DNA of 64,000 nt from Adineta vaga (lineage: Eukaryota; Animalia; Rotifera). Below the pieces are notes generated by a model. The model was not told the DNA's origin, did not search any database, and worked only from the letters and a program-made list of their open reading frames with translations. Below, piece by piece: positions 5,718-60,300 of the stretch. The position numbers were made by a program, and so were the translations under genes. Positions within the stretch are counted from its first letter, which is position 1. The number at the start of each line of letters is the position of its first letter. The DNA is taken from assembly GCA_021613535.1 (NCBI GenBank), contig CP075497.1, forward strand, positions 8,618,001 through 8,682,000, given 5' to 3'.

Positions 5718-6173
5718 ACTGTTGAAAAAAAAACAGATAAATATTTCGGTAAAATCTATTGCAAAAGTATCATAATACATACTTTGTGTACGGCGACGGT
5801 AATCAATGAAAACCTTGTAAATAATGTACAATGAAACAGGATAAAATGCGATTATATCGACTTAGCTCGACGATAGAGAAAAATCAATCATGCAAAACGG
5901 ATTGTATTTTGTCGTATGATTGGTGATTAAATCGCCCACATAGTTTTGAGAATGCGAAAGTTTATGATTTGAAAATACATGAAAATAAAACTCGATATTA
6001 TCAATTAAGTTTATTTTGAAAAAGAAAAATTTGAATCATTTTAATAGAATAAATCATTTTTTAAATAGTGTTTATTCAGAAATATATTGTTACATCCGAT
6101 GAATATCTTTGAATATTCAAGAAAAAAAACCAAACTTTTTTTTGTGATCTAGTTTCAACATTACACTTCAATT

Positions 6174-7133
6174 TTAATTTTGACGACCTAATGTTGGATA
6201 TGGTCCTTGCTGTCTGGGATTTTGCGGCAGAGGTCCTCTTGCACCAGGTGCCATCATTGGACCACGAGGTCCAACCATCATCGGACCAGTTGGTCTACCC
6301 ATTCCTCTTGGTGGTTGAGCTCCATATCGAGGATTGAAACCAGATGGTGCTCCTAGTCTTGCATTAGGTCCCATTGGCATACGATTATAAGGTGGTCCCG
6401 AAGGACGAAAATTAGATGGAGCATAACCTCGATGAATATTATCAAATCGTGCTTTACCACCAACACCAAATTTAGCGAAAAGAACAAGAAATACTACAAC
6501 TAGAAAAAGAAATATATCATAAATTTCAAATACCAATTAAATTCCTGAATAACTAACCTGTTGCAATAAAAAGCAATCCAAGAACAATTTGACCAACATA
6601 AAACGAAGTTGCATTTGAATATGTATATTTTAAATAACTACAACCACTAGGTATAATACAAGCATATGGATTGGCTGCAAACATAACATTAAAAATCACC
6701 ATTATAGTTGCAGTTATTCCACCTAAGACATTCAATGCTGCAGCAACTTGAAGTTTCATCCAAGTTACTTTTCGTGCTAGGAAAACAAAAGAATATAAAA
6801 AATTGTCACTTTAAAAGAAATGCATATTAGCTTCTTCTTACTGGAATGTAATGTGCTTACACAAGCTATAAAACCAAATATAAGTGACCAAACTCCACAA
6901 AGAACTTGCCAACGTGGTGCATACATAAGAATAACTGGTAGATCGACACCAAATGTAGCTAAACTGATCAATAATTGAACTACACCAATTATAGCAACAA
7001 TACATTTGGGCCATGAACGACGAAAATATTTCCGTAAAAAATCTTCTCGTTTCTCTGTCACTTCTTCTTTTTGACGAACATATTCTGCCACATCAGAATC
7101 TGGACTATCTCTATCAGCTCCTCCTGGTCGCAT
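6174..7133 (-). CDS. Uncharacterised four-TM membrane protein with Gly/Pro/Met/Arg-rich tail, 3 exons (7133-6842, 6776-6558, 6499-6174)
   Basis: Two short GT-AG introns join three ORF-track frames in phase. There are four hydrophobic segments and an NPYACIIPSGC loop. Confidence 0.8.
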
Positions 7134-9682
7134 ATCTTTACGTACTGTTTTTGATCAAAGTTTTCGAATCGTTTTGTTGAATGTTGTTGCTTGCTTGATT
7201 GTTTATGTGTGGGTTGTCAGATCACAAAACAAACATTCCGTTAATGCGACAGTTTAGTTTTATGTATAGATTGAATCGATAAGAAGTAAAACAACGACAA
7301 AATTTTTTCTTTCGAATATTCCATTTAAGAAAAAATAAAGTGCAAAAAAAGAACGAAAAAAAAAGAAATGAACAAGTGAAAAATAGTTTTGCAACGGCGT
7401 GATACTCATTTTTCAACTTATACAATACAATTATTAAAAGGAATCAAAACAGAAAGAAAAAAAAGATGACGCCCACAAATTATTCGTTTTTATCCGTTAG
7501 GCGTTTTCAAAGATCCAAGTTCATGACAATTTCAACAGATTATGTCATGGACGATGTATTAAATAAGAATTTTCTCATTGTGTAACGTACAAGAGATCAA
7601 ATTATTAGTTAGAAATACTACATTCCAAGACGATGATTCTGATCTCTAGAAGTGGTCATTGTTCTAAATCATTTAATTTCGTTTTGAGTGGGAATATCTT
7701 TATGCCAACCTACGGTTTCCTTGTTATTGTTTTTATTATTAGGTAAATAATATATTGATGAATTGAATCTTTCTAATAAATTAAGAGTAGAATTCTTTTC
7801 TTTTATTTCTATATAAATAGAAACATGATTAAATTTTGTCATTTCTAATTTCTCGAATCATCACTCAGTTAAATAACTTCGATTGCATGTTCATTCAATC
7901 CAAGGAAAATTTCTCTAAATTTATTGACGAATAAGTTTCTCATTAATGAAGACAAATATCTTTTTTCTTTTCAATCTCGAAAAAATCATTGTTTTTATCG
8001 TTGAATAAACTAAAATTGTTTGATCATTTCTATTATCAATCACATTGTAGTTGATATTGAATCAAATGAATGGCGATACATGGTCACGGAAGAAAAGCAA
8101 ATTAACACGACGATATTAAATGAACCAAACCTATGTTTACGATGAACAAAGAAATAAAACGAGTAGATTTTGTATTATCTTTTTCAATTTCACACATATC
8201 AAAATAATTATTCAGCCAACAGAGAAAAAAACATACATATCTTTAAGTTTTGATGAAAATGATGAACAATCACAGTTATGAATTTATCAGAATGGATACC
8301 GACGTTTTCTCTTAAGATTCAAATTATTATCGGTTTTTTTTAAATATTATTTTCCGCCATAATATATGTTAACTCAATAAAACATTTTGCTATCGGAAAT
8401 GAATGAAAACTACATCACTGAATAGAAATAAGAATGTTTGTTTTTATACAATATACTCTTCTTATAAATTCAACGTGTCTGAGAAGTGTTACATCAATTT
8501 CATGTTTGATTTAATGAAATGATCTGGTAAGATTACATGAACATGTAGATATATAAATTAGAATGAAAGAACATAACATGTTATTATTAGTATAGTTATG
8601 AAAAAAAAAAGTTCTTCTAAACTGAGTTGTTATGACAAAAAGAAACGAGTCTTTTCTTATCATTAATTTTGTTGAAGTAAGAAAAAAAAATGTCTCGATG
8701 ATAATCGTAAAAATCTGTCTTGAAGTTTTAGATTAGAATCAAAAGGACATTATCCGTCTTTTCTTTCCTAGATCTTTATATAGACATATAGGCAGACAAA
8801 ATGAAAATCATTATATATCTTGACGCATGTACACACATTTGTCAATGCTGACTCTTTTCTCTCTTTTGTTCCTATTTTGATTGATCGATTTGATTTCATT
8901 TTCAGCAATGTTAGATGTCTATAGACAATCTTGGACTCGTACTGATATTTGTCCATATATTGAGTTAATTGTTGTCAAGTAAAATGAGAGAGAGACAACA
9001 TCAAATATCTATACAATGTTATGTTCTCTCTATAATCTGGCTCAATGCCAGGTCATACACTGTTTTCCATTCTATGTTAAATTGAACATTTCTCGCGTTT
9101 TCTTAGTCATTTCTAGTCTTGCTTATTAATAGTAATTGAATACGACAAAATGAGAAAATTGGTTGTTGTTGATTTGCCAGAAAACGTTATCAGGTTAACT
9201 TGTCTTTTGAGCTATCTTAACGCGTCTTTCAGACGTATAAGTATAAAGAAGATATAAATAACATATTCGAGTAACAGACAAAACATTATGACTATCTGAC
9301 GTTGATAGTAGCTGTTGTTGTTATTATTATTTCAGTTGATTTTTCATTCTTTTTTGTTTCTTCTTTGACTCTCTCATATGTGTCGACTGAAGGGGGTACA
9401 ACGATATAAGAAAAATCTGTACTCCAATTTCGTTGTCGTCGACAAGAGCAGAATGTATGCATCTGTGTGTGTGTGTATATATAAGACGCGTTCGCGAACA
9501 GCAGCTAACCCTACAAGTGTTGTTGGCGTTAAGCCAACTGCGCGTGGAGCAGCGTGATGTTGATGACGAGCATCATGTGATTTGAATATAGAAAGAGAAT
9601 AAGAAGAAAAGGAAGAAAGAAAAAACTGTTGTTCGTTTGTTGTTCTCTTCCGTTCTCTTTTCTTTATCAAATAATTTTTTTC

Positions 9683-43200: not shown

Positions 43201-46200
43201 ATGAGTTGATATTAAACGAAGAGCTGAACTGTGAACGGATCGACCAGCAGTATCATTGACTAAAATAGAAAAACAATTACAGAGAAAATTTGTAATATTC
43301 TTAAAATTTACCTCGAATAGGAAATTGTTCTAATTGATTGATACAGCCATGTAATTTACTAATTAAACAACTTAAAATGTTTTGATTAGGTTTATTGTTA
43401 TTATTCATTTGTGCATGATATAATTCCATAATAAATTGTTTTAAATCGTTATCATCGTCATTTTCTTCGGGAATACTTATAAAAATATGTAAAAACAATT
43501 TCAAACGTTCTAATCGATCATTTGGTAAAGATATATCATCAGTTAAATATTGATATAATTTAGTTATTAGACCACTATGTACCATTTCAAAAGGTGTCAC
43601 ATCACCTTTAGCAATGATACTTGCAATATCACGTAATGCTTTTGAATTTTCTAAATACTCTTTACCAACATGTAAGGTATCAACAGCTGTTGCTAGACGA
43701 TGAATAATTTGTAATGCAATATTTGACGTTGATGAACTATTTGAGAAATATGTATTACGAAAACTTTTTGCTTGATTTTGTATCCATTCTTTTAATTTTA
43801 ATTTGTCTTGCGATGATAGAGTTATTTGAGTTGAGTGTTGATGTAACATTGATCGTGGCATAGCACTTGATAATAATAAGGAAGCGGCAGCTGGTGCACT
43901 AGATGCATATGCAAATGGTGATTGATGTGTATAAGTTGATGGAACATAGATTGGTGTACTTGGACGAAGACCATTGCTCATTGGTAAAGTAAAATAAGAT
44001 GAAGGATCGATCGCAGTTGCTGGTCGAAAATGTCCTGAACTAGAACCACCACGTGATGGACGAGTGCGCACTGAAGATGGATCAGGTGCAGTTGAAGAAG
44101 CGAGTTCTTCGAACATTGAACGTGCTGATGATTTAAGACGAGAACTAGATGATGTTTGAGGGGTTCGGCCACCACGTTGTGAACGGGTTTCAATTTTAAT
44201 TGGATTGGATTCAGATTGAAAGCGACGAGATGATCCACTACCACGGTATGGAAATGACTGCGTTTTAGGATGAAGATGTGTGGCTGCACCACGATGCGTT
44301 GGCGGAGGATCATTACTATATGAATGCATTTGTTGATCATCTACTATAACACAAAATACATAAATAGTAATATAATCGTATCTTTGTTGTTATTAAAAGG
44401 ATAGATTTTCTAGTCGGAGAAGTATTTCAATAAAAAAACACTGATGAAATAAACTTACCCAACGATTCACTAAGTGCAGGAATGATTGGCTTTAACGGAT
44501 TTTCTTCGGCATGAGTAAGATCAAGTTCACTATGTGTTGTTATTGTTGTTGGATTATGAGTAGCAGAACGTGAAGTAGGCAAATTTGATGATGATGAGAC
44601 ACCAATATCAATAAGAATTTCAATTTGATGAACAACACCTTCTCGATAAAAATAAACTGAAAAGATTTCAGGTAATTTTTTCATTAAAATTTCTGATATT
44701 TGTAATGCACTAATGACAATTTTATAATCAGATGATGCAAGCATTGAAGCAATTTGTGAGGATATTGGTTGTTGTCTTAAAATGGTTTCGAAAAATTCCG
44801 ATGAAGAATAATAAATCATACGAAGTAATGATTGTAAACATCGATGTTTTACTGTTGGACCAGCTGATGTATTATAAACTTCATAGAGAATCGTAAATAA
44901 TGATTGAATAAATGAATTATATAAATCGGGGTTTTCTTTCAACGCTTCAATACGAGCATCTACAGTATTCGTTACTTTTGCTGTTGTAGAAGGAGGATTT
45001 GGTAATTCATCAGTCGAAAGTGAAGGCGACGGTGATGGTGATTGTACAGGATCAGGCGAATTTGGAGTAACTACACGTTTAATAAAACGTGCTTGATTCG
45101 TTTCTTCATTAATTTGTTGTAATTGTTGTAAATCAATTAAATAATGTCGACCGGAAATAACTAACTGAACTTCTTCCTCTTCTTGTTGCCAAGCTTGTTC
45201 AATTGTTTGTGAATCTTGAAATGAATATGAACATAACTGACCTAAAATAATCAAAGAAAACAAATGTTTTGGTATATTTAAAAACCAAACGAGTCTTCCG
45301 AACAAACCTTGATCATCTTGCCAATGCCATAAAATATAACCTTGTGAATTGACATCAAAATCTTTTCTACCTTGAAATAATTGATTAACTTGAAATAATG
45401 CATCATCAGATGGTAATCTCGGTAACATTTCTCCAATTAATGAAACAATTTCATAGATTTCTTGAGGTGAATGTGGAATCAGTTCGATATTATTTGTTTG
45501 TTGAATTGATGCTACATTTGCCATTGTTTCATTTGTTGGTAAAGCAGCTGATTTATATGTTATTGATTTTTTTGGTGATGGTTTTCCTTCAGCTGAACCA
45601 GTTAAAAGACACATTATTGTTTCGATAATATTCATTTTTAGTAATTTAATAGCAAGCGTTGGACAATAAGCTGAAAAAATATGCAACATACGAATAATTC
45701 CAACAAATGTGACACTATTTAATAAAGATGGTTGAACAATAATTATTGTTTGAAAGGTTTTTAATAATTCTTCGGAGGCGATTTCACATAGTATACTTGA
45801 ATCATGATGTAGATTTTCTACTAAACGTGAAAATATTGAGCATACATGTTCAATAGTTTTTTTATCATCTGAACGTAAACGATTCGATAGATTGACTAAA
45901 TGTTCTTGTATATATTTGAAATGATTTCGTGTTAATATATGTGTACAACAATTAGCCACGATAGCTAAAGCTTTGTGTTGAGAATTCATAGAGAAAAAGT
46001 CGATGTATTCAAGGCAAGCACCAATACCATCCTATGTAAAATATCAAGATTTATATTTAAATATAGATCAATTAATTGTAATTACAGAAATAAGAATTTG
46101 TTTAGCATTTCGTTTCGAAATCATTTCTAAAGCTGTTAATGATTGTTCAGCGGTATCGATTGATGTAATACTTCGTAACTAGAAAGAAAGAACAATTGTA

Positions 46201-48525
46201 GAATAGAATTAAGGATTTTTCTTATCTTTTCGAAAGTTTACTTTGCTCAAAAATAATGGTGTAGCTTCAACAACTTGCATAGCTGAACGAGGTAAAGCTT
46301 CCATAAGATAAGTTAATGCTCGACATGCTGTTAAAGCAATTTCAGCATTTGCTTCATTTTCATCTGCTAAACAATCACGTAATGGTGGATAAAGTGCACG
46401 AAATTGAAATCCAGGTAATGTATCTTCATTACTCATTACTAGAAGCTACAAAACAGAAATATAAATAAAAAATTATTGTTATTTCATATTTTATTTTCAA
46501 ACATACCGAACATAATTCATTAAGTGTAGTTAATTTCATATCAGGATCTGGTGACTAGAAGAAAAAAATATATAATTGTGCATTTTCTAATCTAAAATCG
46601 TTTGCTCATACTTGAATGCCTTGAATATATTGTTGTAAACGTCCATTCATAGAACCACTACCTCCAACTCTACTCATTAAATGTTGTACACGACCTGATA
46701 ATGTATGAAAAAGTGCTGCACTAGCCGAGCCACTACTACCACTCGTAGCGACACGACGAAAACTTGGATCAGATAGAATATCGCGTGCTGTAGGACTATT
46801 ATCGGGATCAGTATCGCTTTCGGTCGACATTTGTAAAGATTGTTTGGTAGTTCGATGAGCACTAGCAACTAGCGGAGAAGTATATGATGTAGTCGGAACA
46901 ATACCAGAATAAGACTGAGCTGATGATGTTGATGGTGGAGGAGATGAAGAATTTTGTTGATAATAAGTTGAGGAATTAAATAAATGTATGGGATTGGTCG
47001 ATGATATACCACCGGTATTAGTTGTATCACACGACCGGTTGTCAGTACCGGCGGTGTTGGTGACAGGCACCGATGAACGACTAGAATAAAATATAAAATA
47101 GTTTAATTTTCGTTGTTCTAGTTATCAAAAAAGATTAGGAAGATGATCATATGGCAAGAAAATGGTTTGTATATATGTTTGTATACACAATAAATAAAAG
47201 AAAAGAAAAGAAAAGAAAAGAAAAACGGCAACGTCTTAAATCGAGAAAGAAAGAAAAAAAAGAAGAAAAATAATGTGTAGTAGTGTTATTATTTTATACA
47301 AGGTCAATAATTTAAAAATAATCGTGAAATGTTAACTGGACTTTTATTCGTCCTTCATAGTTTACATCGAACGAGCTGGAGTTACTGATAAATAACAGTC
47401 GCCAATAGACTCTTACATTAGTTATAGTGTCATGTTTTTTTCCTTCTCTCCCTTCTTTTTATACGCAAACCAGAAGGCGATGAATAAGGGTTTTTCTGTT
47501 TTCTCTTTCTTTCCTTATGTGTATGAGTGCAAAAGCGCGTGTGCAAATGGACGTCTTTTTTGTCGCGCATCTGTACGCCGTGGTAACAATACACTGGCTT
47601 ACGTAATTATTACCAACGTATGAAAAGAAAGAAAGAAAAAAAAGATCTTTTTTACCTAGAGGAAGATTGACCCGTTGTCAAATAATCAATGTAAGATTTT
47701 GTTGTATAACGGCGTGGTCGTCGATTATTACTAGTTGAAGGATCACTTGCAACTGTATTAAGTTCTCGTCCGCCTAGTTAAAAAATAAAATGTTAAAAAG
47801 ATAAGATTGAAAAAGAAATATATATATATATTTATATTGAGGCTCGTTTTTTCTTCTTACCTGTTCTTCGTCGAACACAAAAGTTCCCCGTGTCTGTACC
47901 TTCACTTTGTTGTTCAGAATCACTCTTTTTTCGTCGATGACTATGGGTTAGAACGGGTGCAGAATTTCTCTTAGATTTCGATTGAACTAATAAATATTCG
48001 TCTTCTTCCGAAGATGATTGTCGTTGTCGTTTAATTGTTTTCGAATTTGTCACGTGTTCACTTCGTTTTCGACGTCTTATAACGTTCGATTCATGACGTG
48101 TTAATGATATCGATGTTCGTTTTTTATTATCTTCTTGATCTTCGTTTAAATCTGATTCAGATTCAATTCGACGTTTATTATTGCTAATAGCAAGAGCTTC
48201 AAGTGCTTTAGATTTTGCTTGACGAGTTGTTGTGGATGTAACTGAGGAAGACGATTGTGCTGGTTGATGTTGTTGTTGTTGTTGTTGTTGTTGCTCTTCA
48301 GCGTCTTCTATCATAGAAAATTTTTTCATTTTGATATCATCAGAATGAAACAAATTACCTTCGATATTCGATTCGTTTGTCGTTGATTTACGTTCGGCAC
48401 TAATTTAAAAAAAAGAAAATATGCATTTTCTTCAAAAACAGAAAACGACTAATTTTGTATACGTACGTTAATAATCTTAATGATCGTCTAGTTGAAGAGC
48501 TTGAATTGTTTTGTAAGTGGGCCAT
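40242..48525 (-). CDS. TRIP12: HECT E3 ubiquitin ligase TRIP12/Ufd4 (IDR + ARM repeats + WWE + HECT)
   Basis: [10 protein letters not shown] and [15 protein letters not shown] (ARM); WHWQDDQG...[23 protein letters not shown] (WWE); EVQYEDE|[10 protein letters not shown]; [15 protein letters not shown]; [17 protein letters not shown] with the catalytic Cys. The start MAHLQNN at 48525 is inferred from in-phase splicing. Confidence 0.95.
47196..47220 (+). repeat. (AAAAG)5 intronic microsatellite
   Basis: Five tandem AAAAG units in the long TRIP12 intron. Confidence 0.85.
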
Positions 48526-49710
48526 TCAAGACGATGTTGGACATTCGAAAGAGTAAACTATGCGAATTTTTATTCTGAGACATTGAACATACTAGAGATC
48601 GATCGGGATAAGAAGAAAAACAGAATTGAATGAATAAATAGAAAAGAATAATTGCGTTTTTTCCTTGTTTGATATAGAAAGAATCGTTTGTCTTCTTTAA
48701 ATGTGTGACGAAAGAAAAAAATTGAAACAATATATTTTTATTGTGTAATCTAAAAGAAGAGGGAAAGATTTTGTGAAATCTTATTACTCAAGAAAAACAC
48801 GTAAGAATGAACAATATAATCATGCGAATGAGACAAGACGGTAATGCAAAATCTTATTGGATGATTGTTGTTTGTGCATTGATTCAAGTCGAATATGCAT
48901 TTCAATCAGCTGATCTCGATATGTTCGAAAATATTCATATGACTCTGAATATTACGAATTTATTTTTCAACTGGTAATAATTTCAGGTCATATGATATGT
49001 TTTAACAAAATCTTCCTAACGAGATGAGTCATTAGTGTCAAATGTTTAAGAGTTTTTAAAAATCTTTAAAACAATTCTCTGCTTACATATAGATAAATAT
49101 AAATGTTTCTATCATATAAATAAAACTTTATATAACTTCTAAATAAAAAAATCATAGTGCAAAACGAACGTCTTCAAATTAAAATAAGAAAAACTTTGAA
49201 ATGTCATCACAAGCATACTTTATTGATCATATGTCTTCCAGTATAGTCCATAGATTTGATAAGAATATGATTCGTTTTTGATGAATCATAAAATTAATTA
49301 TCATGCATACTGAGAAAATTCCAGAAGGTATATCAATGGGTAAGGTCCATATAATAAACGTCAGCACGTTTATTTATTCTATATTTTATATATGGGCGGT
49401 ATTGAAAGTAGGCATGCACTAATGACAATGGCAGATGTAATTTCAAACATCCGATGAAAAAAGTTCCTTTTCTTTTCATATTTTGTAGCCAAAAGGCATA
49501 ACTTTACGAATGCTAATGGATACCTTTGAAGATTTATTATATTGACTTTGATAGTTCATTATTTTTATACGTAAACATATTGAATCTAGGTCTAGGTTAT
49601 CTCTAAGTATTTTTATTATTTATTTGCAAATAAATATTCAAGAAAAAACTATATATCCACTCCCAAAAAATGATAGTTAAATCGAGAAAAAAGAAATGAT
49701 GAGTCTTTTA

Positions 49711-51229
49711 TTAATTTTCAACTTGAAATGATGTAAACTGCCAATCTTTTCGGATTTTATCATTTTCTTCTGGCCAATTAGCTGCTTTGGAAACCCATGT
49801 TCCTAAATATGGTAAACATATATCGAGAATTTCTTCCGAATCTATATCATCTGGTAAACATATTCCTTCATTTGGATGTTTCAAACAGTATGTTAGTGCT
49901 GCTACGAGACTAATCGCTACTTGTAATGTTGTTGCATTTTGTCCTGGTACTAATTTTCTTGCTTGATGAATATCAAGTACACTACCTGTCCACCAAGCAG
50001 AAACATAATGACCACCCAATAGAAGAACACCAACTTCGTCAGCACCATCAATGACGTCATCGTTTAATATACGAAGTTTCGGTTGTAATTGATAATTATG
50101 CATACGAAATTCAATTAATGAACTAATTGCAGAATCTGTTGGTAAATATGCGTAATGAACTGTTGGACGATACAAAATATCATTGTTATTATTATCATCT
50201 TCATTACGAATAGTTAAATATTTTGAAATACCATAAGCTTCACCATGTCGAATAACCATACCGATAATTTCTCCACTTGGTACCCACGAACGAACCTAAA
50301 GATATAATAAGATTAATTTGAATAGAATGAAATATAAATATAAAAAAATATACCCAAGTATTAATACCATTTGTAGCTAAACAAACTTGATTACATGGAC
50401 CTTCTTTTTGTTTATGAAAATAGATTCCATTTGGAAGATTTTTTTCATGTGTTCCCCAACCCATTTCAGCTGGTGCTGCACCTTCTTCAACAAAACCTTC
50501 AATTGACCATGTATTAACAAATTCATTAACTTTCTTCGGATCTTTAGTTAATTGTGTATCACGTTCCGATATATGTATTGTTTTAACACCTAATAAATAA
50601 GCTAATTGAGGATAATCTTTGACTTTTAAAGCATTTTCTAGTTTTATTTTTTCACCATCAACAATTTGGATGCCTTCTTGTTTGAGTACATATTGTGCCA
50701 TATCAATTAATGCACGTTTAACAAAATGTGAAACAAGTCCTGGATTACATCCATGATCTAGGATTGCTGTTGGCCCTTTTTGATTCCATGTTATATCATT
50801 TTGCATTTCAATCAATTGCATTTGTCGATGATATAATGTCAATAAACGTGGATCATTCTTATATGCTTCGCCAAATGGTTCCCATAATTCTACGGATGTA
50901 TTGATAAAGCAAACTTGATGATCATGACACCATTTTAATAAACATCGTGTTTCAAGATTATAAGCAAGATCAAGAAGAATATCACCTGATGATAAATATT
51001 TATTTAAAATTTCACCATAATTTTTTCGTGTGATTAATTCTTGCTCATATCTTATTTGTTTATATCCCGAAAGATAGCGTTGAATTCTAGCCCGCTGGTC
51101 GAGTGCATCGATGATTGTTATTGATTGTATATGATTTTTTAATAGAAAATAATCGATTAAAAGTGGTAGTGTACATTGCGATACACCACCACAACCAATA
51201 ACTAATAATCGACGAGAAGACGAGTCCAC
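49711..51229 (-). CDS. hss: Bacterial-type homospermidine synthase (NAD-dependent, saccharopine-dehydrogenase-like fold), 2 exons (51229-50354, 50295-49711), about 486 aa, apparent GTG start
   Basis: Rossmann LLVIGCGGV; HGCNPGLVSHF; IHISERDTQ; EFVNTWSIEGFVEEG; AEMGWGTHEK; W|VRSWVP; RPTVHYAY; GADEVGVLL; QNATTLQVA. One 58-nt GT-AG intron at 50296-50353. Confidence 0.93.
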
Positions 51230-52412
51230 TTTTAATACGAACTATCGAGAGACTTAACTCACGAAACAAACTATACAATGAGAAGAAAAATAATGGATAT
51301 CTAACGAAGAAAAATGAGCTCCTTTTCAACTGAAAATTTTTAAGGAAATGGGAGTAAATATCAGGTGCAATATGTTTTGATTAGAATCGACCTTGTAATA
51401 GTTAAAAGTAATAAAAGTACATATATAGAATTGAAATAAGACCATGTGAATCCTATACAACTGTATGAGATATGCGTAGGTTCTTTTTTATTATCAAGGA
51501 GAGCAGAAAGATTTCTATTAATATATCGTGACTACGCATATTAGAAAGAAGAAAAAACAGTAATACAAAGTCCTTCTCGAATTTAATCAAAATTTTTAGT
51601 CTAGAATCAACCAACACTTTTGAAAGATTCAACTAAAAAGAAGTTTGTCATAACAAATGTTAATTACAATAGTACTTTATCACTTCTACTAATTTCACAG
51701 AAGATATTCTCTTTGTGACTAGATGATTTCGTATTTATAGAGTTTTTTTTTCATCTATCAGATATCCATCTCGTTCCGATTGAATAAACGGATATATAAC
51801 TGATGTAATAATATATTATACGACTTGAACTAAAACTGTTTTTTTTTCTCTCTCTATATTTATCAATGGATGAAAAATCGTGACTGTGTACAAACAATAA
51901 CTGAAAATGCAAAATTGATTTTAAATATGGATATCACTAGATCATTTTTTTAAGCCAATATAAATTACTTTTGTTCGTTTGTTATTACAATTATACAATG
52001 GAAAAGCAGTGAAGCAAAGATACAAAAATAATATTCTCATGTTTCTCTACTCTTCATCAAATAGACCATTGAATACTGATGTTCTCAAGCCATAATAAAT
52101 CATTTCATCTGTCAATTTGTTTTTCTTTTAACTTTTTCAAAGACTTAAAAGTGAAAATTATGATTGTTAAGAAAAACTTTCGTTCATATTTATTTCCCAT
52201 TAAATTAACTTCTCTAGGCAAACATCATGCAAATAGATATCTTAGGAATAGTTTTCAGCCAATTAAAAATTCTTCTCGTCTCTATTGACAAAATCGGCAC
52301 ATGAGAATTTTAAATTTTTGTTTTGTACTTTCTTTTCTCGTCGATCGTTCACTTCAAGAAGACATTTACTATGACATACGCACATTGATTTAATATATCA
52401 GAATAACTTCAT

Positions 52413-55404
52413 ATGGACTCGAATGATACAGATATTCAACAGAATCCTCAACTTGAAAATGACAATATGGCCGATGAAATGATGAATAATGAACTTTCTA
52501 CTGAGTTAAAAGATCCAGTAGAGATTAAACAAAAGATAAGAAGTAAATCTTCTCAATCAAAAAAACCAAAATCAAATGTAAAGAAAACGACGAATAATAC
52601 ACCATTAACAGCAAATGGGACATTAAATTTACTTCTTCCGACAATGATCTCGACAAGAACTGAAGATAATTCTGGAGTTAAACGTTCAGTAACAGTCGAA
52701 ATAAGTTATGCACGATCAAATCTTGATGTTATTCGTTTATGTTTACGAGAATTAAAATGGAAAGAAGTAAATATATCATCTCATCTATATTCTCAAAATC
52801 TGCTTTTCTCTAAAAGGTTTTCTCTGGTACAACTCTTGATCCTGATATTTATTGGCATTCAACATCATTTCATGATGGAAATATTAATTTCGCATATTCC
52901 ACTGGTCGAGTGAATAAATTTCCTGGTAATTTGTTTTGCTCACAGATACTAATTATTGTCTTTTCATTTAGGTATAAATGATTTATTACGTAAAGTTCAT
53001 TTAACACGTTTATTAAATAATATGAGATTATTATTTCCGAATGAATATGATTTTTATCCCAAAACATGGTTTCTTCCGGAACAAAATCAACAATTTAAAG
53101 ATGATATACGTTATATACATCAATTAGATGAAAAATATAACCGACGATTAACAACATTTATTGTTAAACCATCAGGTAAATAAAAAGAAAATTTTCAATC
53201 TTTATTCGTTATTTATTTTATTAACTTTAGATGGTTCACAAGGTGAAGGCATCTATTTAATTCGAGATGCATCTCAAATTACTACTACTACAAAACGTGC
53301 ACATGTTGTTCAAGGTTTGTTTTTCTTTTCAAAATCTTGAGTGTTTATTTTGATCATGTTTAGAATATATTGATCGACCATTATTAATTGGCGGTCTTAA
53401 ATTTGATTTACGAATTTATGTTCTAATTTTAAATCTTTATCCCTTGGAAATTTATCTTTACGATGAAGGACTTGTTCGTTTTGCTACGATTGATTATAAA
53501 GCTCCGTCAAGTGATAATCTTCATGAGACATATATGCATTTAACCAATTATTCGTTAAATAGACGGAGTATTCATTATAAACATACAGTGAATGATAAAC
53601 AAACAGATGGAAGTAAACGTAAATTAAGTCTTGTTTGGAATCAATTAAATGGAATCTATGGAAATGACAAAATTGAACGTACAAAAAGTTTAATTCGAGA
53701 ATTAATCAATCGAACAATGTTAGCAGTCGTACCTGAACTTCGTGTTGAATATGAGTTTCAATTACCCTTAAAGAAAAATCCAAATATTTCCTGTTTTCAA
53801 GTATTGTATTATTAAATTGAAATATTTGATAAAGATCATTTTTTTTTCTTGTAATTGTAGATCATTGGTTTTGATATTATCTTAGATAATCAAGTGAAAC
53901 CAATTTTATTAGAAGTAAATGCAAATCCTTCACTTCGAATCGATTTTGATAAAGACAATGATGATGGTAATAGAAGAAGTTTAATTACATTTGATATATT
54001 TATTTTGTAGGAAAAATCGTTTGTCAACCGAGTCTGATTGATGAAGAAATAAAAAAACCTTTAGTTTTAGAAACACTTAAATTAGCATTACCAAAGAAGA
54101 AATTAGATACAATGTAAGTTAATTTCTTGTTTGATTAAAATTTCAATTGAAATTAATCTAGTGCTCGTCATATTAAAAATCAAGCGAATGAGAAACTTAT
54201 AGCTGAACGAGTAGAAAAACTTGCTCAACGTCGTGTCGAAGAACGTAATGAAAAAATGAAAAATGCACGACAAAGTCGTTTTGATCTGAGATTAAATCCA
54301 TATTTTTCTCGGCCATTGCCCATGAAACCCAAACAATCGATTCTTGAACAACAAGAACAATCTGGAAAAGAATCAAAAGTTCTCGATGTTTCGTCATCAC
54401 AACCAATTATACCTATTCAATCGACTGAAAATACATCTCCATACGCATTATTCAACAATGAATCAACAAAACCTACGAGAAAAATCGGAAAACGTTTGAA
54501 AAATGTACGTTATTCCAATGATGATGAAAGTAGTTCAATGGTTACAACTATGATTGACACATTTTCATCATTAAATCTTAAACAAACGTCTGTTACATCT
54601 GGAACATTCGTTTCTCAAGCAACACGAACCGATATGACGGCTATAACAACAATCGAAAAGTTGAAACTTATATTTTCACCAAGCCATCAAAAAGAATATG
54701 AACATTTGTTTATTATTGATAAAATCGGTGATATTTTTATTCGACTAGTCATTCTTACAGGTTGTAAATTCATGACTGGTGGACAATTTAGAAATTTTGC
54801 AAGGTAAGATACACTTTCTTCCATAATTTTTTAGATTTTTTATTGGAGTGATTAAATAGTCTATGCGAAGTTATTGTTGAAAGTATAACATCATCAACTA
54901 TCGATATTTTATATTGTAAACTACTTAAAAAATGGCAACAATTTGTTTTACGAACAACATTAACAGGTCATTATTTTAATGATATGAGAGAAGAATTTTA
55001 AGATTAACGAATAAAAATGTATATTGCAATTTCTAGGATTACCATTTACAGCATTTATTGAAGCATGTTTTATCTTTTCACAATGGAAATTTCCTAGTGC
55101 TCATCATCTACTCGAAAGTGTTAATTGTTTAATAAATATTTGTACTGAACGATTAAATTCAAATTCTCAAATCGATCAGAATATACTTCGTCAAAGCACA
55201 ACAAATTACAATACAATAGGTTCTTCATCATTAAACCTTCGTTCTAGTTCGAGTAATCTTCGTTCATCAACAACAATACCAATGCGTCGTTCCATGACTA
55301 GAAATTCTAATCAACAGATTCTTACTGTGAATGAAAAAACACGACAAAGGACATCAACACAATCAGCAAAAAGTGTTTTTCCTCTATTTTTCGATGTCTT
55401 ATAA
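52413..55404 (+). CDS. TTLL11: Tubulin polyglutamylase TTLL11-like, about 10 exons
   Basis: VNKFP|G; FYPKTWFLP; FIVKPS|DGSQGEGIYLI; VVQ|EYIDRPLL; KFDLRIYV; MHLTNYSLN; CFQ|IIGFDII; LLEVNANPSLRID; C-terminal FRNFA..IDILY segment as in TTLL11. Confidence 0.85.
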
Positions 55405-55903
55405 ACTTTTCTTCAGAATCTAATTAAATAAGATTTATATAAACCTCTAACAATCAAAATTTGGAATTCTTCTAGGAACAATAATATTAACCATCATTTG
55501 CAATTCATTCGAGTAATAATTCTCTTTATTGATCCTTCTGCATTAGAGCTATGAACACTCAGACATACAAGATAGATCTAATTAGGCAAAGCAAATGGGT
55601 GTGATGCATTTTTTTTTTCTCAGTAAGTCAAATGTCGAGAGAAGCAGTATGAAGAAGAATAATAACAAAACGAACGAAATGAGATTGCACGAATGGTCCA
55701 CAGCACATCAAGCAAAAACGAGGAGAAGAAGGAAAAAGTTTTACAAGAAAGAAACGAGTGAAAACAAAACGTTTTTGGTTAATCTTTTGTTTGCTTCAGA
55801 TTTTAGAATCTAACAGTACAAGTAGAAAATAATGAGATTAGGTATATTGCACAGCAACAAAAACAAAAACGGGAGAGACAAAACAAATCCATTCAATAAT
55901 TCT

Positions 55904-57046
55904 TCATATGGCTGATGATGCAGCGACCATTTTCTCTAATTGATGACATTTATTTCGTTCATCAGCTAATTTTTCTAATTTGAAAAAAAAAAGAATAACA
56001 TAGAATGAATTTTAAGTTGACAAAGAAAATACCTTTGAGTTTATCAGCTTTAAGTTGTAATTTACCAACATCACTTTCTGCTTCATCGGTACGTTGTTGA
56101 GCCTAAATAGAGAATACATTTGAGTAGAAGAAAAAGTTATTCAAATAAATATTCTTACTGATTTAAGTCGAGCTTGAATATCTTCAATTGTTTTTCGATA
56201 TTTATCCTCTGTTCCATGTGCCTAAAATTTCAGTTTTTTTCTTTATAGAAATCAATTCGAATAAATATCTGTGTATTTAATACTTTTTCTTCAGCTTGAA
56301 GTAATGATTTCATTTCAACATACGCATGACGAATATCTTTTTCAAGATTCGTAATTCGTCTAGAAGTAAGTCATAGAGAAATTCATTATTTCCATTGATT
56401 AAACTTACTGTTCTGCATTAGATGATCGACGTTCAGTTACTTCGAAGCGTTCTTGTAATTCATTCAATTTACCAGCAGTCTATTGAAAAGTAAATCTAAT
56501 TTTCAGTTCTATTCAATCAAGATTGTTTACCTCTTGAAAACGTTTATCTGTCTCTATACTACATTCTTTTGCTTTTCTTAATTCATCGTCTAAATCAATT
56601 TCTTTATCTTTAACAGTTGTTAATTTAGTTTCAAGATTTGCACAAACACTAAAAATAAATCGTTTATCTTTATTTACGACGAAAGAAAAAAGAACAATTT
56701 CTTCTTACTGTCGAGCAGCTTCAGATACTTTAATAACTTCGATTAATTGTGTTGTAACATGATTAACCCGAGCTGTTGTATTGTCTAAATTAACTTCGAC
56801 TAATTGTACTTGACGTCGTAGATGTGCTGCTTCAGATTCAGCTTCAATTCGAGATTGAAGTTCTTTTTCTAATTCCGTATTAACACGTCGATGTTCATCA
56901 CGATTTGTTTCTAATTCTTGAAATAAATTTACAATTTTTTCTCGGACAGTTAACGGTTGTTGTTGTTCTTGTTGTTGTTCTTGTTTAGAAAGATCCTTTA
57001 ACAATGTTTCAGGCATCGTTGGTTTAACATCAATCGCGCTTGACAT
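55904..57046 (-). CDS. Divergent tropomyosin-like coiled-coil protein, 7 exons
   Basis: EAESEAAHLRRQVQLVEVNLD matches the tropomyosin AESEVAALNRRIQLVEEDL motif. Later exons read RITNLEKDI..EMKSL..AEEK|A..TEDKY..TIEDIQARLKS|AQQRTDEAESDVGKLQ in tropomyosin register. Confidence 0.8.
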
Positions 57047-57182
57047 TCTCAATAAAACAATAATACACAAAACAACTTCGATGGATTGATGAGAGAGGTC
57101 AGATAGTTGTTTATTCTGGTATCGATCGATCGATCATCGACGTCGTCGTTCTTCTTCTTCTTCTTTCCCAAATTAGGAACAG

Positions 57183-57248
57183 CCAATGAAACGATTTCTT
57201 AGCGACATCTATCTTCTATCGTCGCTTGGAGATATAATACTTAGCAAC
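57183..57248. promoter_or_regulatory. Bidirectional promoter core with CCAAT box and three RFX X-box-like sites
   Basis: 261-nt spacer between divergent ATGs (57046, 57308). CCAAT 57183; ATTTCTTAGCGAC 57194-57206; GTCGCTTGGAGAT 57221-57233; ATACTTAGCAAC 57237-57248. Confidence 0.5.
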
Positions 57249-57307
57249 AGTTTTAACTAACCACAAAAATGGTACAGAACATTTCGATAGTTTTTCTAGA
57301 TTAAAAC

Positions 57308-60300
57308 ATGTCGAAAGAAGGATCACCAAGAGACAAAACAAAAGATGAATCAGCATCAAGTACGAATTAATATATCATATCAATTGTTATAATTGATGTC
57401 TTTGTTAACTTTTTAGTGCATCAACCCATGTCTGCTATGGATGCTGGATCCGTAGATACTCATAGTAAATAAAGAAAGAATTCTTAATTGATAAAAAAAG
57501 ACGTTCGTTGTATATCTGTAGATACACCCGATGCTAATACAAACGAAGTTTTGAACGTGGATAATGAATCTGATAATGCTCATTCAGTAAAAAGAACGAC
57601 TCAGGATAATAATGCAGAAGATGAAGAAGAAGAAAATCAAAATTCAGCTCAAGCCGATCAAGATGAAGGTCAAGAAGAAGTGAATACTACGAATACTGAT
57701 AATGAAAATCAAGATATTATTGAAAAACCTCAACCTGATAGTCCACCAAGACTTCCAGACACATTCTATTATGATGCTGAAGAAATTCAAGCTAAACCAT
57801 TAACAACAGATGAAAAAACATTTCCACAAAATACATTATCGATGTAGTAAGTAGAATATCACCGTCATCATAAAGAACAGTTACTGACGAACTATTCTAG
57901 TCGATCATTTGGTTATGATTGCAATAAACGTGGCAATTTATATATACTAGATAATAAAACAATTATGTTTGCTGCTGGTTGTATTCTTGAACTTATCGAT
58001 TTGGCAAGTGGTGAACATAAATATATTCGAACTGTTGGTGGTTATAGTATTGGTGCATTAGTGGTAAGTTGAAAATCTCTAGAAATATTAGATTGTATAT
58101 ATTTTTTTAAATAAATACAAAGGTTCATCCCAGTAGACAATATTTTGCTGTTGGTGAAAAAGGTCATATGCCAAATATAGTTATTTATGAATATCCATCG
58201 TTAAGACCGTATCGAATATTGAAAGGAGGAACACAACGATCGTATGCTTATTTGGATTTTAAGTAAGTTAAAAGATTGAATATAGAAGAACGAGAAATGA
58301 ATTTATATCGTTTGTATTTAGTGCTGAAGGTGATTTATTAGCATCGTTGGGTGCAAGTCCAGATTATATGTTGACAATCTGGGATTGGCGTGATGAAAAG
58401 ATTTTATTACGAAGCAAAGCTTCTTCACAAGAAGTTTTCAAAGTATCATTTTCAAAAGATTTAAAAGGACATTTAACAACATGTGGTATTGGTCATATTA
58501 AGTAAGATTTGTATATCGCATATTCTATCTACAATCATTGAGATTCAAACTAGTTTGATTGTATATAAAACTTTTTATATCCTAGATTTTGGAAAATGGC
58601 TCGAACTTTTACTGGTTTGAAATTACAAGGTGAATTAGGTCGGTTCGGTCGAACAGAAATTTCTGATATTGAAGGTTATCGTGAATTACCTGATGGCAAA
58701 GTAAGTTATCATATTTTCATGAAATTAAATCTTCTAAATTAATTTTAGGTGATATCTGGTTCTGAATGGGGTAATATGTTATTATGGGATGGTGGTTTAA
58801 TTCAAATCGAAGTATGTCGAACAAAAGGCAAACCATGTCATAATGGTCCAATACAACAAGTCCTTCTAAATGAAAGTGATGTGTATACAGTTGGTGAAGA
58901 CGGTTTCGTACGTGTTTGGGATTTTGAAACGATTGATACAGCGGAAGCAACCGATGAAGGATCTAAAATGGAAATGGATCCATTGAATGAATTACGAGTT
59001 GGAACAGATAGTAAATTAATGGGAATTACACATGGCGTAGCTGATGATATGAGTGTTTGGTTTGCTCAAGTAAGATTCGTCTTCAATAAACTTTTTATTA
59101 TTTTGATTTGTTATTTGTATAAATAGGATGCTAAAGGATATATTTGGAAATTAGATTTAACATTCTCAAAAAATAGTACAGCACCTGAAATTATCCTTTC
59201 ATTTATGTCAGGCGCTGTTACTGGTCTCGATGTTTCATCTGTTTATAATATTTTTGCTTCTTCCGCTGGCAATTGTAAGTTCAACAAGATATATGCATTG
59301 TTCTCATTTTACTTTTTCGTTTATCTAGCAATTCGAATAAATCATATCGTGTCACAAGATTTATTATCTCAACGAATATTCTCTGCGAATATAACAAGTC
59401 TAAAATGGCTGCCTAGTGTCGTAAGTTAAATGAAATACTATTCTTTCACATATATCTCTTATTTTTCTCTTGTTTTCAGTTTAATGAAAAATCTGATGGT
59501 GTATTAGTTGGTTTTTCTGATGGTATTATTCGATATTTAAAACTTCGTTCAGGAAGTAAACCAACAGGAAATGAAAAGAAACTTGAATTTGATTTAAAAA
59601 TGATGCAAGTGTTAAAACCACATACCAAAGCGATTACTTTTATTACGTTAGATGTTAAAAATCAATGGGTTGCTACTGGAGTTCGTTGATGATTTCGATT
59701 AATTCTTTACGATCATTTCTTTTTTTTTTCATTATTTAGAGTTCTGATGGCACAGTATTCTTCTTTAATTTCACACCCAAAGGTTTGAATCCAATTGGTT
59801 TCGTTAACGTTAAAGAAGAAATTACTTTTATGACATGGACACCTGCACAATATGTAAGAATTTTTGACAACTAGTAAATGTAAATTTCTTGGTACAACTT
59901 TTTAGGAGAAAACACGTCTTCTTGTTTGCTTGAAAACGGGTGTTATTTATGAATTTGAAGGTCCAAGTGGTATTAAATTCGATACATCAATATCATATCT
60001 AATTGAAGCACAATTACCCGTACGAATATTTCGTTTTCGCAGTATTAAATCTCGATTACGAGTAAGAAAATGAATTGTTATGTATAGAATTTTGATGTGT
60101 TTGTTTGCAGCATGAAGAAGAACTTGAACGTAAACGAAAAGAAGAAGAAGAACGACAAAAGAAATTGGAAGAAGAAAGACGTTTACGTGGCATCGAGAAA
60201 AAAGAAAAAGGTAAATTCATATCTTTTGTTTTATGGTTATCATCATTATTGGACAAATGAATCAAACTGGATTGTCTTCTTGTTTTCAGAAGGTGAAAAA

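Follow-up and report, generated by a model that had tools for sequence, protein, structure and literature searches.

We report that the bdelloid rotifer Adineta vaga carries, on chromosome 6, a bacterial-type homospermidine synthase (HSS) gene that is an old, domesticated horizontal transfer and not contamination. The gene occupies positions 49711-51229, on the minus strand, of the stretch of DNA analyzed here (64,000 nucleotides, positions 8,618,001 to 8,682,000 of contig CP075497.1; referred to below as the window), and it consists of 486 codons in two exons, the open reading frames (ORFs) at 50240-51229 and 49711-50259 being linked across one intron. We think it likely that this gene would allow bdelloids to make sym-homospermidine beside an intact spermidine pathway and that its translation would start at a GUG codon. 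An initial annotation, made from the sequence of the window without database searches, had placed a full-length HSS gene with one spliceosomal intron at this position, and its coordinates agree exactly with the ORF boundaries, the stop codon, and the GTG described here. The intron was also confirmed, as a 58-nt GT-AG intron in phase 0. The gene is indeed full length, in that both domains are present in the 486 codons, but the description needs to be corrected at the 5′ end, where the reading frame opens with GTG and not with ATG.

To identify the protein, we searched with the window gene exon by exon and modeled the fold of a database ortholog (P0024, 75% identical) rather than that of the joined window product. 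The exons contained the Pfam domains Sacchrp_dh_NADP and Sacchrp_dh_C, and their best match in the PDB was the Legionella pneumophila enzyme 2PH5 (E values of 1e-40 for exon 1 and 4e-37 for exon 2). The exons matched 14 distinct PDB sequences, every one of them an HSS. Carboxyspermidine, saccharopine, and lysine 6-dehydrogenases belong to the same Pfam superfamily (Sacchrp_dh_NADP and Sacchrp_dh_C), but, unlike the HSSs, no carboxyspermidine, saccharopine, or lysine dehydrogenase was matched by either exon in the PDB search at an E value of ≤10. There was no match in NCBIfam for either exon and none for the full-length ortholog, from which it follows that NCBIfam lacks a matching HSS model. 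The AlphaFold model of the ortholog (predicted local distance difference test [pLDDT] score of 82, predicted template modeling [pTM] score of 0.87) aligned with HSS crystal structures at TM scores of 0.80 to 0.85 and E values of ~1e-40, the identity to these solved enzymes in the structural alignments being ~31 to 34%. Its match to carboxyspermidine dehydrogenase (TM score, 0.57 to 0.62) and saccharopine dehydrogenase (TM score, ~0.5) was weaker, with E values of 1e-14 or worse. Neither by sequence nor by the fold of the ortholog, then, does the protein group with the carboxyspermidine or saccharopine dehydrogenases, the outcome that the initial annotation had named as speaking against an HSS. 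Its assignment of the gene to the bacterial type, and not to the plant type derived from deoxyhypusine synthase (DHS), also held. The PDB matches were HSSs throughout; the DHS gene of A. vaga itself lies elsewhere in the genome, on contig 3.

Mutagenesis and crystal structures have identified seven residues as important in the bacterial enzymes BvHSS and PaHSS, namely, E117, N162, E210, W229, E237, H296, and E298 in BvHSS numbering (PMC8489232). In alignments with PaHSS and the Legionella enzyme, these residues correspond to E114, N162, E222, W241, E249, H309, and E311 of the window protein, so that all seven are kept, and they are invariant in an alignment of 20 rotifer and bacterial relatives. 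The statement that the family motifs are intact was thus correct where the catalytic residues are concerned. With E249 encoded by exon 1 and both H309 and E311 by exon 2, the Glu-His-Glu triad is divided by the intron. Taken together, the matches, the fold, and the conserved residues suggest that the product of the window gene is most probably an active HSS.

The A. vaga assembly (100.8 Mb in six contigs) holds a single HSS copy, which lies mid-chromosome. In the window, an ORF with a WWE domain (TRIP12) and an ORF with a TTL domain (TTLL11) lie on opposite sides of the gene, as had been noted initially, and the locus of Adineta ricciae, which is annotated TTLL11-HSS-TRIP12, is collinear with window positions 43755-58405. 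TTLL11 is also the upstream neighbor of the HSS gene in Adineta steineri, Rotaria sordida, and Rotaria magnacalcarata. The GC content at third codon positions (GC3) of the HSS gene is 0.144, compared with 0.13 to 0.21 in the flanking host ORFs, and its relative synonymous codon usage (RSCU) correlates with theirs at an r value of 0.90, in agreement with the host-like codon use claimed earlier. The intron sits at an identical codon boundary in seven genomic copies (those of A. vaga, A. ricciae, four metagenome lineages, and one Rotaria paralog), where it is 49 to 67 nt long; the HSS gene of Didymodactylos is intronless. The intron is missing from two full-length transcript contigs (L002 and L003) of other bdelloid samples, which implies that these contigs represent spliced mRNAs, and the 5′ end of L002 consists of the last 9 nt of the rotifer spliced leader. 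A search of the A. vaga genome for this spliced-leader sequence plus GT gave 58 matches, versus 0 for a control pattern. Upstream of the window gene, a candidate acceptor AG for the spliced leader lies at 51271-51272. The spliced-leader RNA genes are clustered (e.g., at C5:9884354-9925971 and C5:10912929-10934589), often as head-to-head pairs ~157 nt apart. Contamination, which the initial annotation had called unlikely, is excluded because the gene has an intron, has conserved synteny in independent assemblies, follows host codon use, and gives rise to a spliced-leader transcript in a relative.

Among database proteins, the only near-identical one is A. vaga I4U23_029996 (P0043), and the named eukaryotic matches all come from bdelloids (A. 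ricciae, 84% identical; R. sordida, 77%; R. magnacalcarata and A. steineri, 75%; Didymodactylos, 55%). Bacterial matches reach ~53% identity (Omnitrophota), the nearest being uncultured Omnitrophota/Chlamydiota-like sequences, and 73 HSS sequences from viral contigs are 30 to 46% identical (34 to 46% for the 71 full-length matches). We placed these relatives in a careful maximum-likelihood tree of 54 rows. The Adineta and Rotaria sequences formed a clade with support of 100/100, and all rotifer HSSs, including that of Didymodactylos, formed one clade with support of 89/60 that was present in 88% of the bootstrap trees. The sister of the rotifer clade, at 100/98, was a bacterial protein (P0055; cluster mate, RefSeq WP_228840623.1), and the group made up of both sat among proteins from a Parachlamydiales metagenome-assembled genome, metagenome proteins, and many Omnitrophota sequences. 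The HSS phylogeny that had been proposed as a check therefore shows the rotifer copies as one clade nested in bacterial sequences. The simplest reading of the tree is that there was one transfer into an early bdelloid, and the intron was gained after Didymodactylos branched off. Rotaria has, in addition, a second, divergent copy with the same intron site, represented by R. sordida P0037 (L184), which has a GTG start, and Rotaria sp. Silwood2 P0041 (L016), which has an ATG start.

In the tree, the viral sequences formed clades of their own, apart from the rotifer HSSs. We considered a giant-virus donor and rejected it, the viral-contig HSSs being 35 to 46% identical and lying elsewhere in the tree, so that a virus is not apparent as the donor. 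One of the closer nonrotifer relatives (P0044, 55% identical) is encoded at positions 6001-7455 of a 52-kb contig (L018; ENA ERZ25039528 contig_45572) that is gene dense, has a GC content of 36%, and carries genes for an ankyrin-repeat protein, a MutS fragment, and an ABC transporter together with many small ORFs. This contig could be from an intracellular bacterium or a large virus.

To measure selection, we summed the counts for the ratio of nonsynonymous to synonymous substitution rates (dN/dS) over two separate exon alignments of the eight complete copies. The 28 pairwise values ranged from 0.085 to 0.308, indicating that the gene is under purifying selection.

The first in-frame ATG of the HSS reading frame is codon 136 (codon 136 or 137 across the copies). 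At the 5′ end of the frame, 12 bdelloid copies carry the sequence AAA-GTG-G/A (A. vaga, A. ricciae, A. steineri, R. sordida and its paralog, R. magnacalcarata, four metagenome lineages, and two transcripts); the base at +4 is G in all of these except the R. sordida paralog, which has A. Each of the 12 has an in-frame stop codon 15 to 240 nt 5′ of the GTG, with no in-frame ATG between the two, and in ~1300 nt of upstream sequence we found one ATG in any frame, versus ~30 expected from the ATG density of the window. In both transcripts (L002 and L003), the in-frame stop lies inside the leader, directly after the spliced leader in one of them, and there is no AUG before the GUG, so that in those species there can be no coding exon upstream. 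Codons 2 to 135, which encode the NAD-binding fold and E114, have a median dN/dS of 0.24, compared with 0.22 for the rest of the gene, and the fact that this stretch is constrained like the rest implies its translation. An ATG stands at exactly the position of the GTG codon in the Rotaria sp. Silwood2 paralog and in Didymodactylos. Mapped on the tree, this distribution would need two changes, an ATG-to-GTG change on the Adineta-Rotaria stem and a single reversion. Downstream of the GUG, the next AUG, 53 nt away, is not in frame; its ATG falls within the conserved codons for S-Q-C. From these observations, we infer that the protein would be made by initiation exclusively at the GUG codon.

Because the gene has no ATG start, all public models of it are wrong at the 5′ end. 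The A. vaga model (I4U23_029996) is truncated and begins at Met136, and the A. steineri model (P0035) loses the first ~30 codons and with them the glycine-rich motif. The A. ricciae model (P0001; L004:6001-6010) uses a 10-nt first exon ~900 nt upstream, and the Rotaria models (P0020 and P0023) add N-terminal peptides that are unrelated to each other.

Two of these kinds of model correspond to alternative explanations of the 5′ end, both of which we regard as highly improbable. If translation began at the in-frame AUG at codon 136, as in the NCBI model of the A. vaga gene and as the preference of eukaryotic ribosomes for AUG would lead one to expect, the product would be a 350-amino-acid protein without the NAD-binding domain and the 5′ third of the gene would be an untranslated relic. 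However, codons 2 to 135 are open in 12 lineages, are under purifying selection equal to that on the remainder, and encode the Rossmann fold with the catalytic E114; scanning ribosomes would, moreover, meet the out-of-frame AUG earlier, and two relatives have ATG at the GTG position. Alternatively, an upstream exon might supply the AUG and the GTG might specify an internal valine, an idea in keeping with the 10 to 30 N-terminal residues added in the models of A. ricciae, R. sordida, and R. magnacalcarata and with the fact that the A. vaga in-frame TAG ends in AG, a possible splice acceptor. Yet the added peptides are mutually dissimilar, the A. ricciae model depends on the tiny distant exon just described, and the leaders of both transcript contigs contain in-frame stops and no AUG. 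That we are dealing with bacterial contamination or with a recent nonfunctional insertion, as the closest nonrotifer relatives of the gene being bacterial might suggest, we consider to have a negligible chance of being correct in view of the spliceosomal intron, the host codon use, the mid-chromosome site in a six-contig assembly, the synteny in several species, the dN/dS values far below 1, and the trans-spliced mRNA in a relative.

A number of observations weigh against the interpretation that we favor, that of a domesticated HSS translated from a GUG and making sym-homospermidine. The “ionic slide” residue at the entrance of BvHSS, Asp94, is Asn in the window protein, and the glycine-rich motif, IGCGGVSQ, has the form GxGxxS, compared with GxGxxG in BvHSS, although both variants are shared with the bacterial sister sequences; because those sequences carry it too, the GxGxxS form of the NAD-binding motif is probably functional. 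The stem of the Adineta-Rotaria clade is long, at 0.69 changes per site, which is compatible with a shift in function, and the monophyly of the rotifer sequences including Didymodactylos is moderately supported, such that two transfers are possible. With regard to the start codon, the basis for GUG initiation is comparative sequence only. The synonymous rate just after the GUG is low (0.11, versus 0.28 overall), but this stretch ranks 9th among 468 windows and is thus no more than suggestive, and RNAalifold yielded no convincing start-enhancing hairpin near the GUG. What it did return, a small stem at the GUG and, ~40 nt downstream, a second stem of 10 bp that has one compensatory change, we rejected as a start-enhancing RNA structure because it is wrongly placed for the classical effect and weakly supported. 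The long stem and the Asp94-to-Asn change, together with the presence of a full spermidine pathway that makes the need for a second triamine not evident, could instead mean that the enzyme changed its job after the transfer and now acts on other di- or polyamines (cadaverine, 1,3-diaminopropane, or spermidine) or forms a different product. We think this unlikely, if less so than the alternatives for the 5′ end, since the seven residues for catalysis and substrate anchoring that define putrescine binding are all present, the change at position 94 is common to the bacterial sister sequences, and the predicted fold of the ortholog is nearest to HSS.

A. vaga has kept the canonical animal route to spermidine. 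Its genome has S-adenosylmethionine decarboxylase (SAMDC) at two loci, spermidine/spermine synthase N-domains at two loci, and several ODC-family genes, so that the check for presence or loss of SAMDC and SRM suggested by the initial annotation ended in retention of both SAMDC and spermidine synthase. Since ODC, SAMDC, spermidine synthase, and DHS are all retained, HSS would supplement the animal pathway rather than replace it. Sparing of S-adenosylmethionine, hypusination, and stress tolerance, which the initial annotation had proposed, are conceivable roles for such an added route. The genome also contains an intronless 512-amino-acid ORF for a bacterial-type Orn/Lys/Arg decarboxylase with ordinary ATG codons (C1:11102638-11103732; L183:1147-2685, minus strand), which matched OKR_DC_1 with an E value of 6e-66 and PDB entry 2x3l with an E value of 2e-35. 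This ORF is likely to be a second foreign polyamine gene, and it is possible that it encodes an arginine decarboxylase (ADC); a remark in a preprint that Bacillus-like ADCs occur in rotifers agrees with it. An intronless 325-amino-acid ORF of the PAD_porph family, which is agmatine deiminase-like, lies at C5:5016586-5017479 (L188:1465-2442, plus strand) and matched its Pfam family with an E value of 1e-33 and PDB entry 6b10 with an E value of 4e-13. Along with several arginase/agmatinase-family genes that are also present in the genome, the decarboxylase and the PAD_porph protein could feed putrescine made from arginine to HSS.

Taken together, these results suggest the following history for the gene. 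A bacterial NAD-dependent HSS (EC 2.5.1.44 type) would have entered the bdelloid lineage before the split between Adineta and Rotaria, most likely once, in the common bdelloid ancestor, from a bacterium related to the present-day Omnitrophota/Chlamydiota-like sequences. In the lineage of Adineta and Rotaria it would then have gained its one spliceosomal intron; it would have acquired the base composition of its host and a polyadenylation signal, as well as trans-splicing to the spliced leader in one species or more, and it has remained under purifying selection beside TTLL11. The enzyme is predicted to condense two putrescines, or putrescine and the aminobutyl group of spermidine, to sym-homospermidine by means of tightly bound NAD+, thereby supplying a second, S-adenosylmethionine-independent triamine alongside the intact ODC/SAMDC/spermidine synthase pathway. 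Because the mRNA leader has no AUG, translation would start at the conserved GUG, which lies in a strong Kozak-like context. Such a start predicts low or conditionally regulated output, and the out-of-frame AUG downstream may capture ribosomes that scan past the GUG. The activity of the enzyme, the occurrence of homospermidine in vivo, and initiation at GUG with its regulatory meaning are points that we infer. A more ambitious version of this proposal, which we put forward tentatively and would not expect to hold in every part, is that bdelloids truly make sym-homospermidine, that HSS output is limited or condition dependent through the combination of the GUG with the out-of-frame AUG as a sink, and that HSS is one of a set of foreign polyamine genes, with the bacterial-type decarboxylase and the PAD_porph gene, that have unusual translational controls.

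The rotifer protein shares its two-domain architecture and its catalytic residues with the bacterial HSSs of Blastochloris viridis (4PLP and 4TVB), Pseudomonas aeruginosa (6Y87), and Legionella pneumophila (2PH5), but its gene differs from theirs in residing on an animal chromosome, in being interrupted by an intron, in following the codon use of the host, in its putative GUG start, and in the replacement of Asp94 by Asn. The plant HSSs, which arose from DHS, form the same product but are spermidine dependent and belong to an unrelated protein family. EIF4G2/DAP5 is a eukaryotic gene that is translated only from a non-AUG codon, GUG. The putative HSS start resembles that of EIF4G2/DAP5 in that a near-cognate codon is conserved, its context is strong, and an in-frame AUG is lacking; in contrast, the HSS gene is bacterial in origin, and the case for its start comes from comparative sequence and two transcripts. 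The HSSs of chloroviruses and other giant viruses and phages (PMC9992855 and PMC7019647) are homologous to the rotifer protein and were likewise acquired by horizontal transfer, but they occupy separate clades of the tree. According to the account in PMC13625781, which cites Li et al. 2015 and Shaw et al. 2010, a bacterial-type HSS moved into the eukaryotic nucleus in Paramecium, where homospermidine is reported to have replaced spermidine. The rotifer differs from Paramecium in being a metazoan and in having kept SAMDC, spermidine synthase, ODC-like genes, and DHS.

It is established that bacteria have HSS and that the gene has passed to viruses and protists (PMC4725965, PMC8489232, PMC9992855, and PMC13625781), and a 2026 paper describes the eukaryotic triamine as almost exclusively spermidine, with exceptions in some plants and in some protists such as Paramecium (PMC13625781). 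A conserved, selected HSS across bdelloids would add an animal group to these exceptions, and homospermidine is predicted to occur in bdelloids. In our literature search, we found no report linking homospermidine with rotifers, and the supplements of bdelloid papers contained no mention of such a link. With the present case, a metazoan joins the hosts of bacterial HSS, and the start codon of the gene is an unusual feature that is well supported. The gene is a natural case of a horizontally acquired gene that lacks an AUG start and has been under selection from a time before Adineta and Rotaria diverged, and its start bears on how foreign genes fit eukaryotic translation; the missing ATG also explains the wrong 5′ ends in every public HSS gene model. 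To be set against this significance are the facts that foreign genes are very common and well known in bdelloids, that UniRef already labels several of the orthologs “Homospermidine synthase,” albeit automatically, and that the function is a predicted one.

The features of the locus are listed in Table 1. They include two upstream noncoding blocks, ~115 to 240 nt before the HSS start, that are near-invariant in Adineta, in Rotaria, and in four bdelloid lineages from metagenomes, whereas synonymous sites between the same lineages are close to saturated. These blocks are likely to be promoter or leader elements. One of them holds the sequence CAGCTG/CACCTG.

Table 1. Features of the HSS locus of A. 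vaga, in window coordinates
Feature	Position	Strand	Description
HSS exon 1	50354-51229	minus	292 codons from GTG; Rossmann NAD-binding domain and first part of Sacchrp_dh_C; E114, N162, E222, W241, E249
HSS intron	50296-50353	minus	58 nt, GT..AG, phase 0, 12% GC; between ..NTW and VRSW..
HSS exon 2	49714-50295	minus	194 codons; H309 and E311 in motif IRHGEAY
HSS stop codon TAA	49711-49713	minus	
AATAAA polyadenylation signals (n = 2)	49619-49624 and 49612-49617	minus	~90-100 nt past HSS stop
HSS GTG, putative initiation codon (AAA-GTG-G)	51227-51229	minus	Homologous to ATG in Rotaria sp. Silwood2 paralog and Didymodactylos
In-frame TAG	51242-51244	minus	15 nt 5′ of GTG; closes the frame, no ATG between
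First AUG of mRNA body	ORF 51087-51176, ATG 51174-51176	minus	Out of frame, 29 codons, overlaps HSS codons
Upstream noncoding block 1 (..CTGATATTTACTCCCATTTCC..)	51345-51367	minus	Conserved in Adineta, Rotaria, and metagenome lineages; candidate promoter/leader element
Upstream noncoding block 2 (..TCATACA.TTGTAT...TTCACA..)	51445-51470	minus	Conserved; candidate promoter/leader element
TTLL11 (tubulin tyrosine ligase-like), host gene	52413-55420	plus	Divergent from HSS
TRIP12 (WWE/HECT E3 ligase), 5′ part	43755-48525	minus	Downstream of HSS, same strand; gene extends below 43755

HSS and TRIP12 are arranged in tandem on the same strand, 1.19 kb apart. Between the 3′ end of HSS and the TRIP12 ATG (48525), the sequence at window positions 48525-49040 shows conservation with A. 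ricciae in every reading frame, which implies that it is conserved noncoding DNA.

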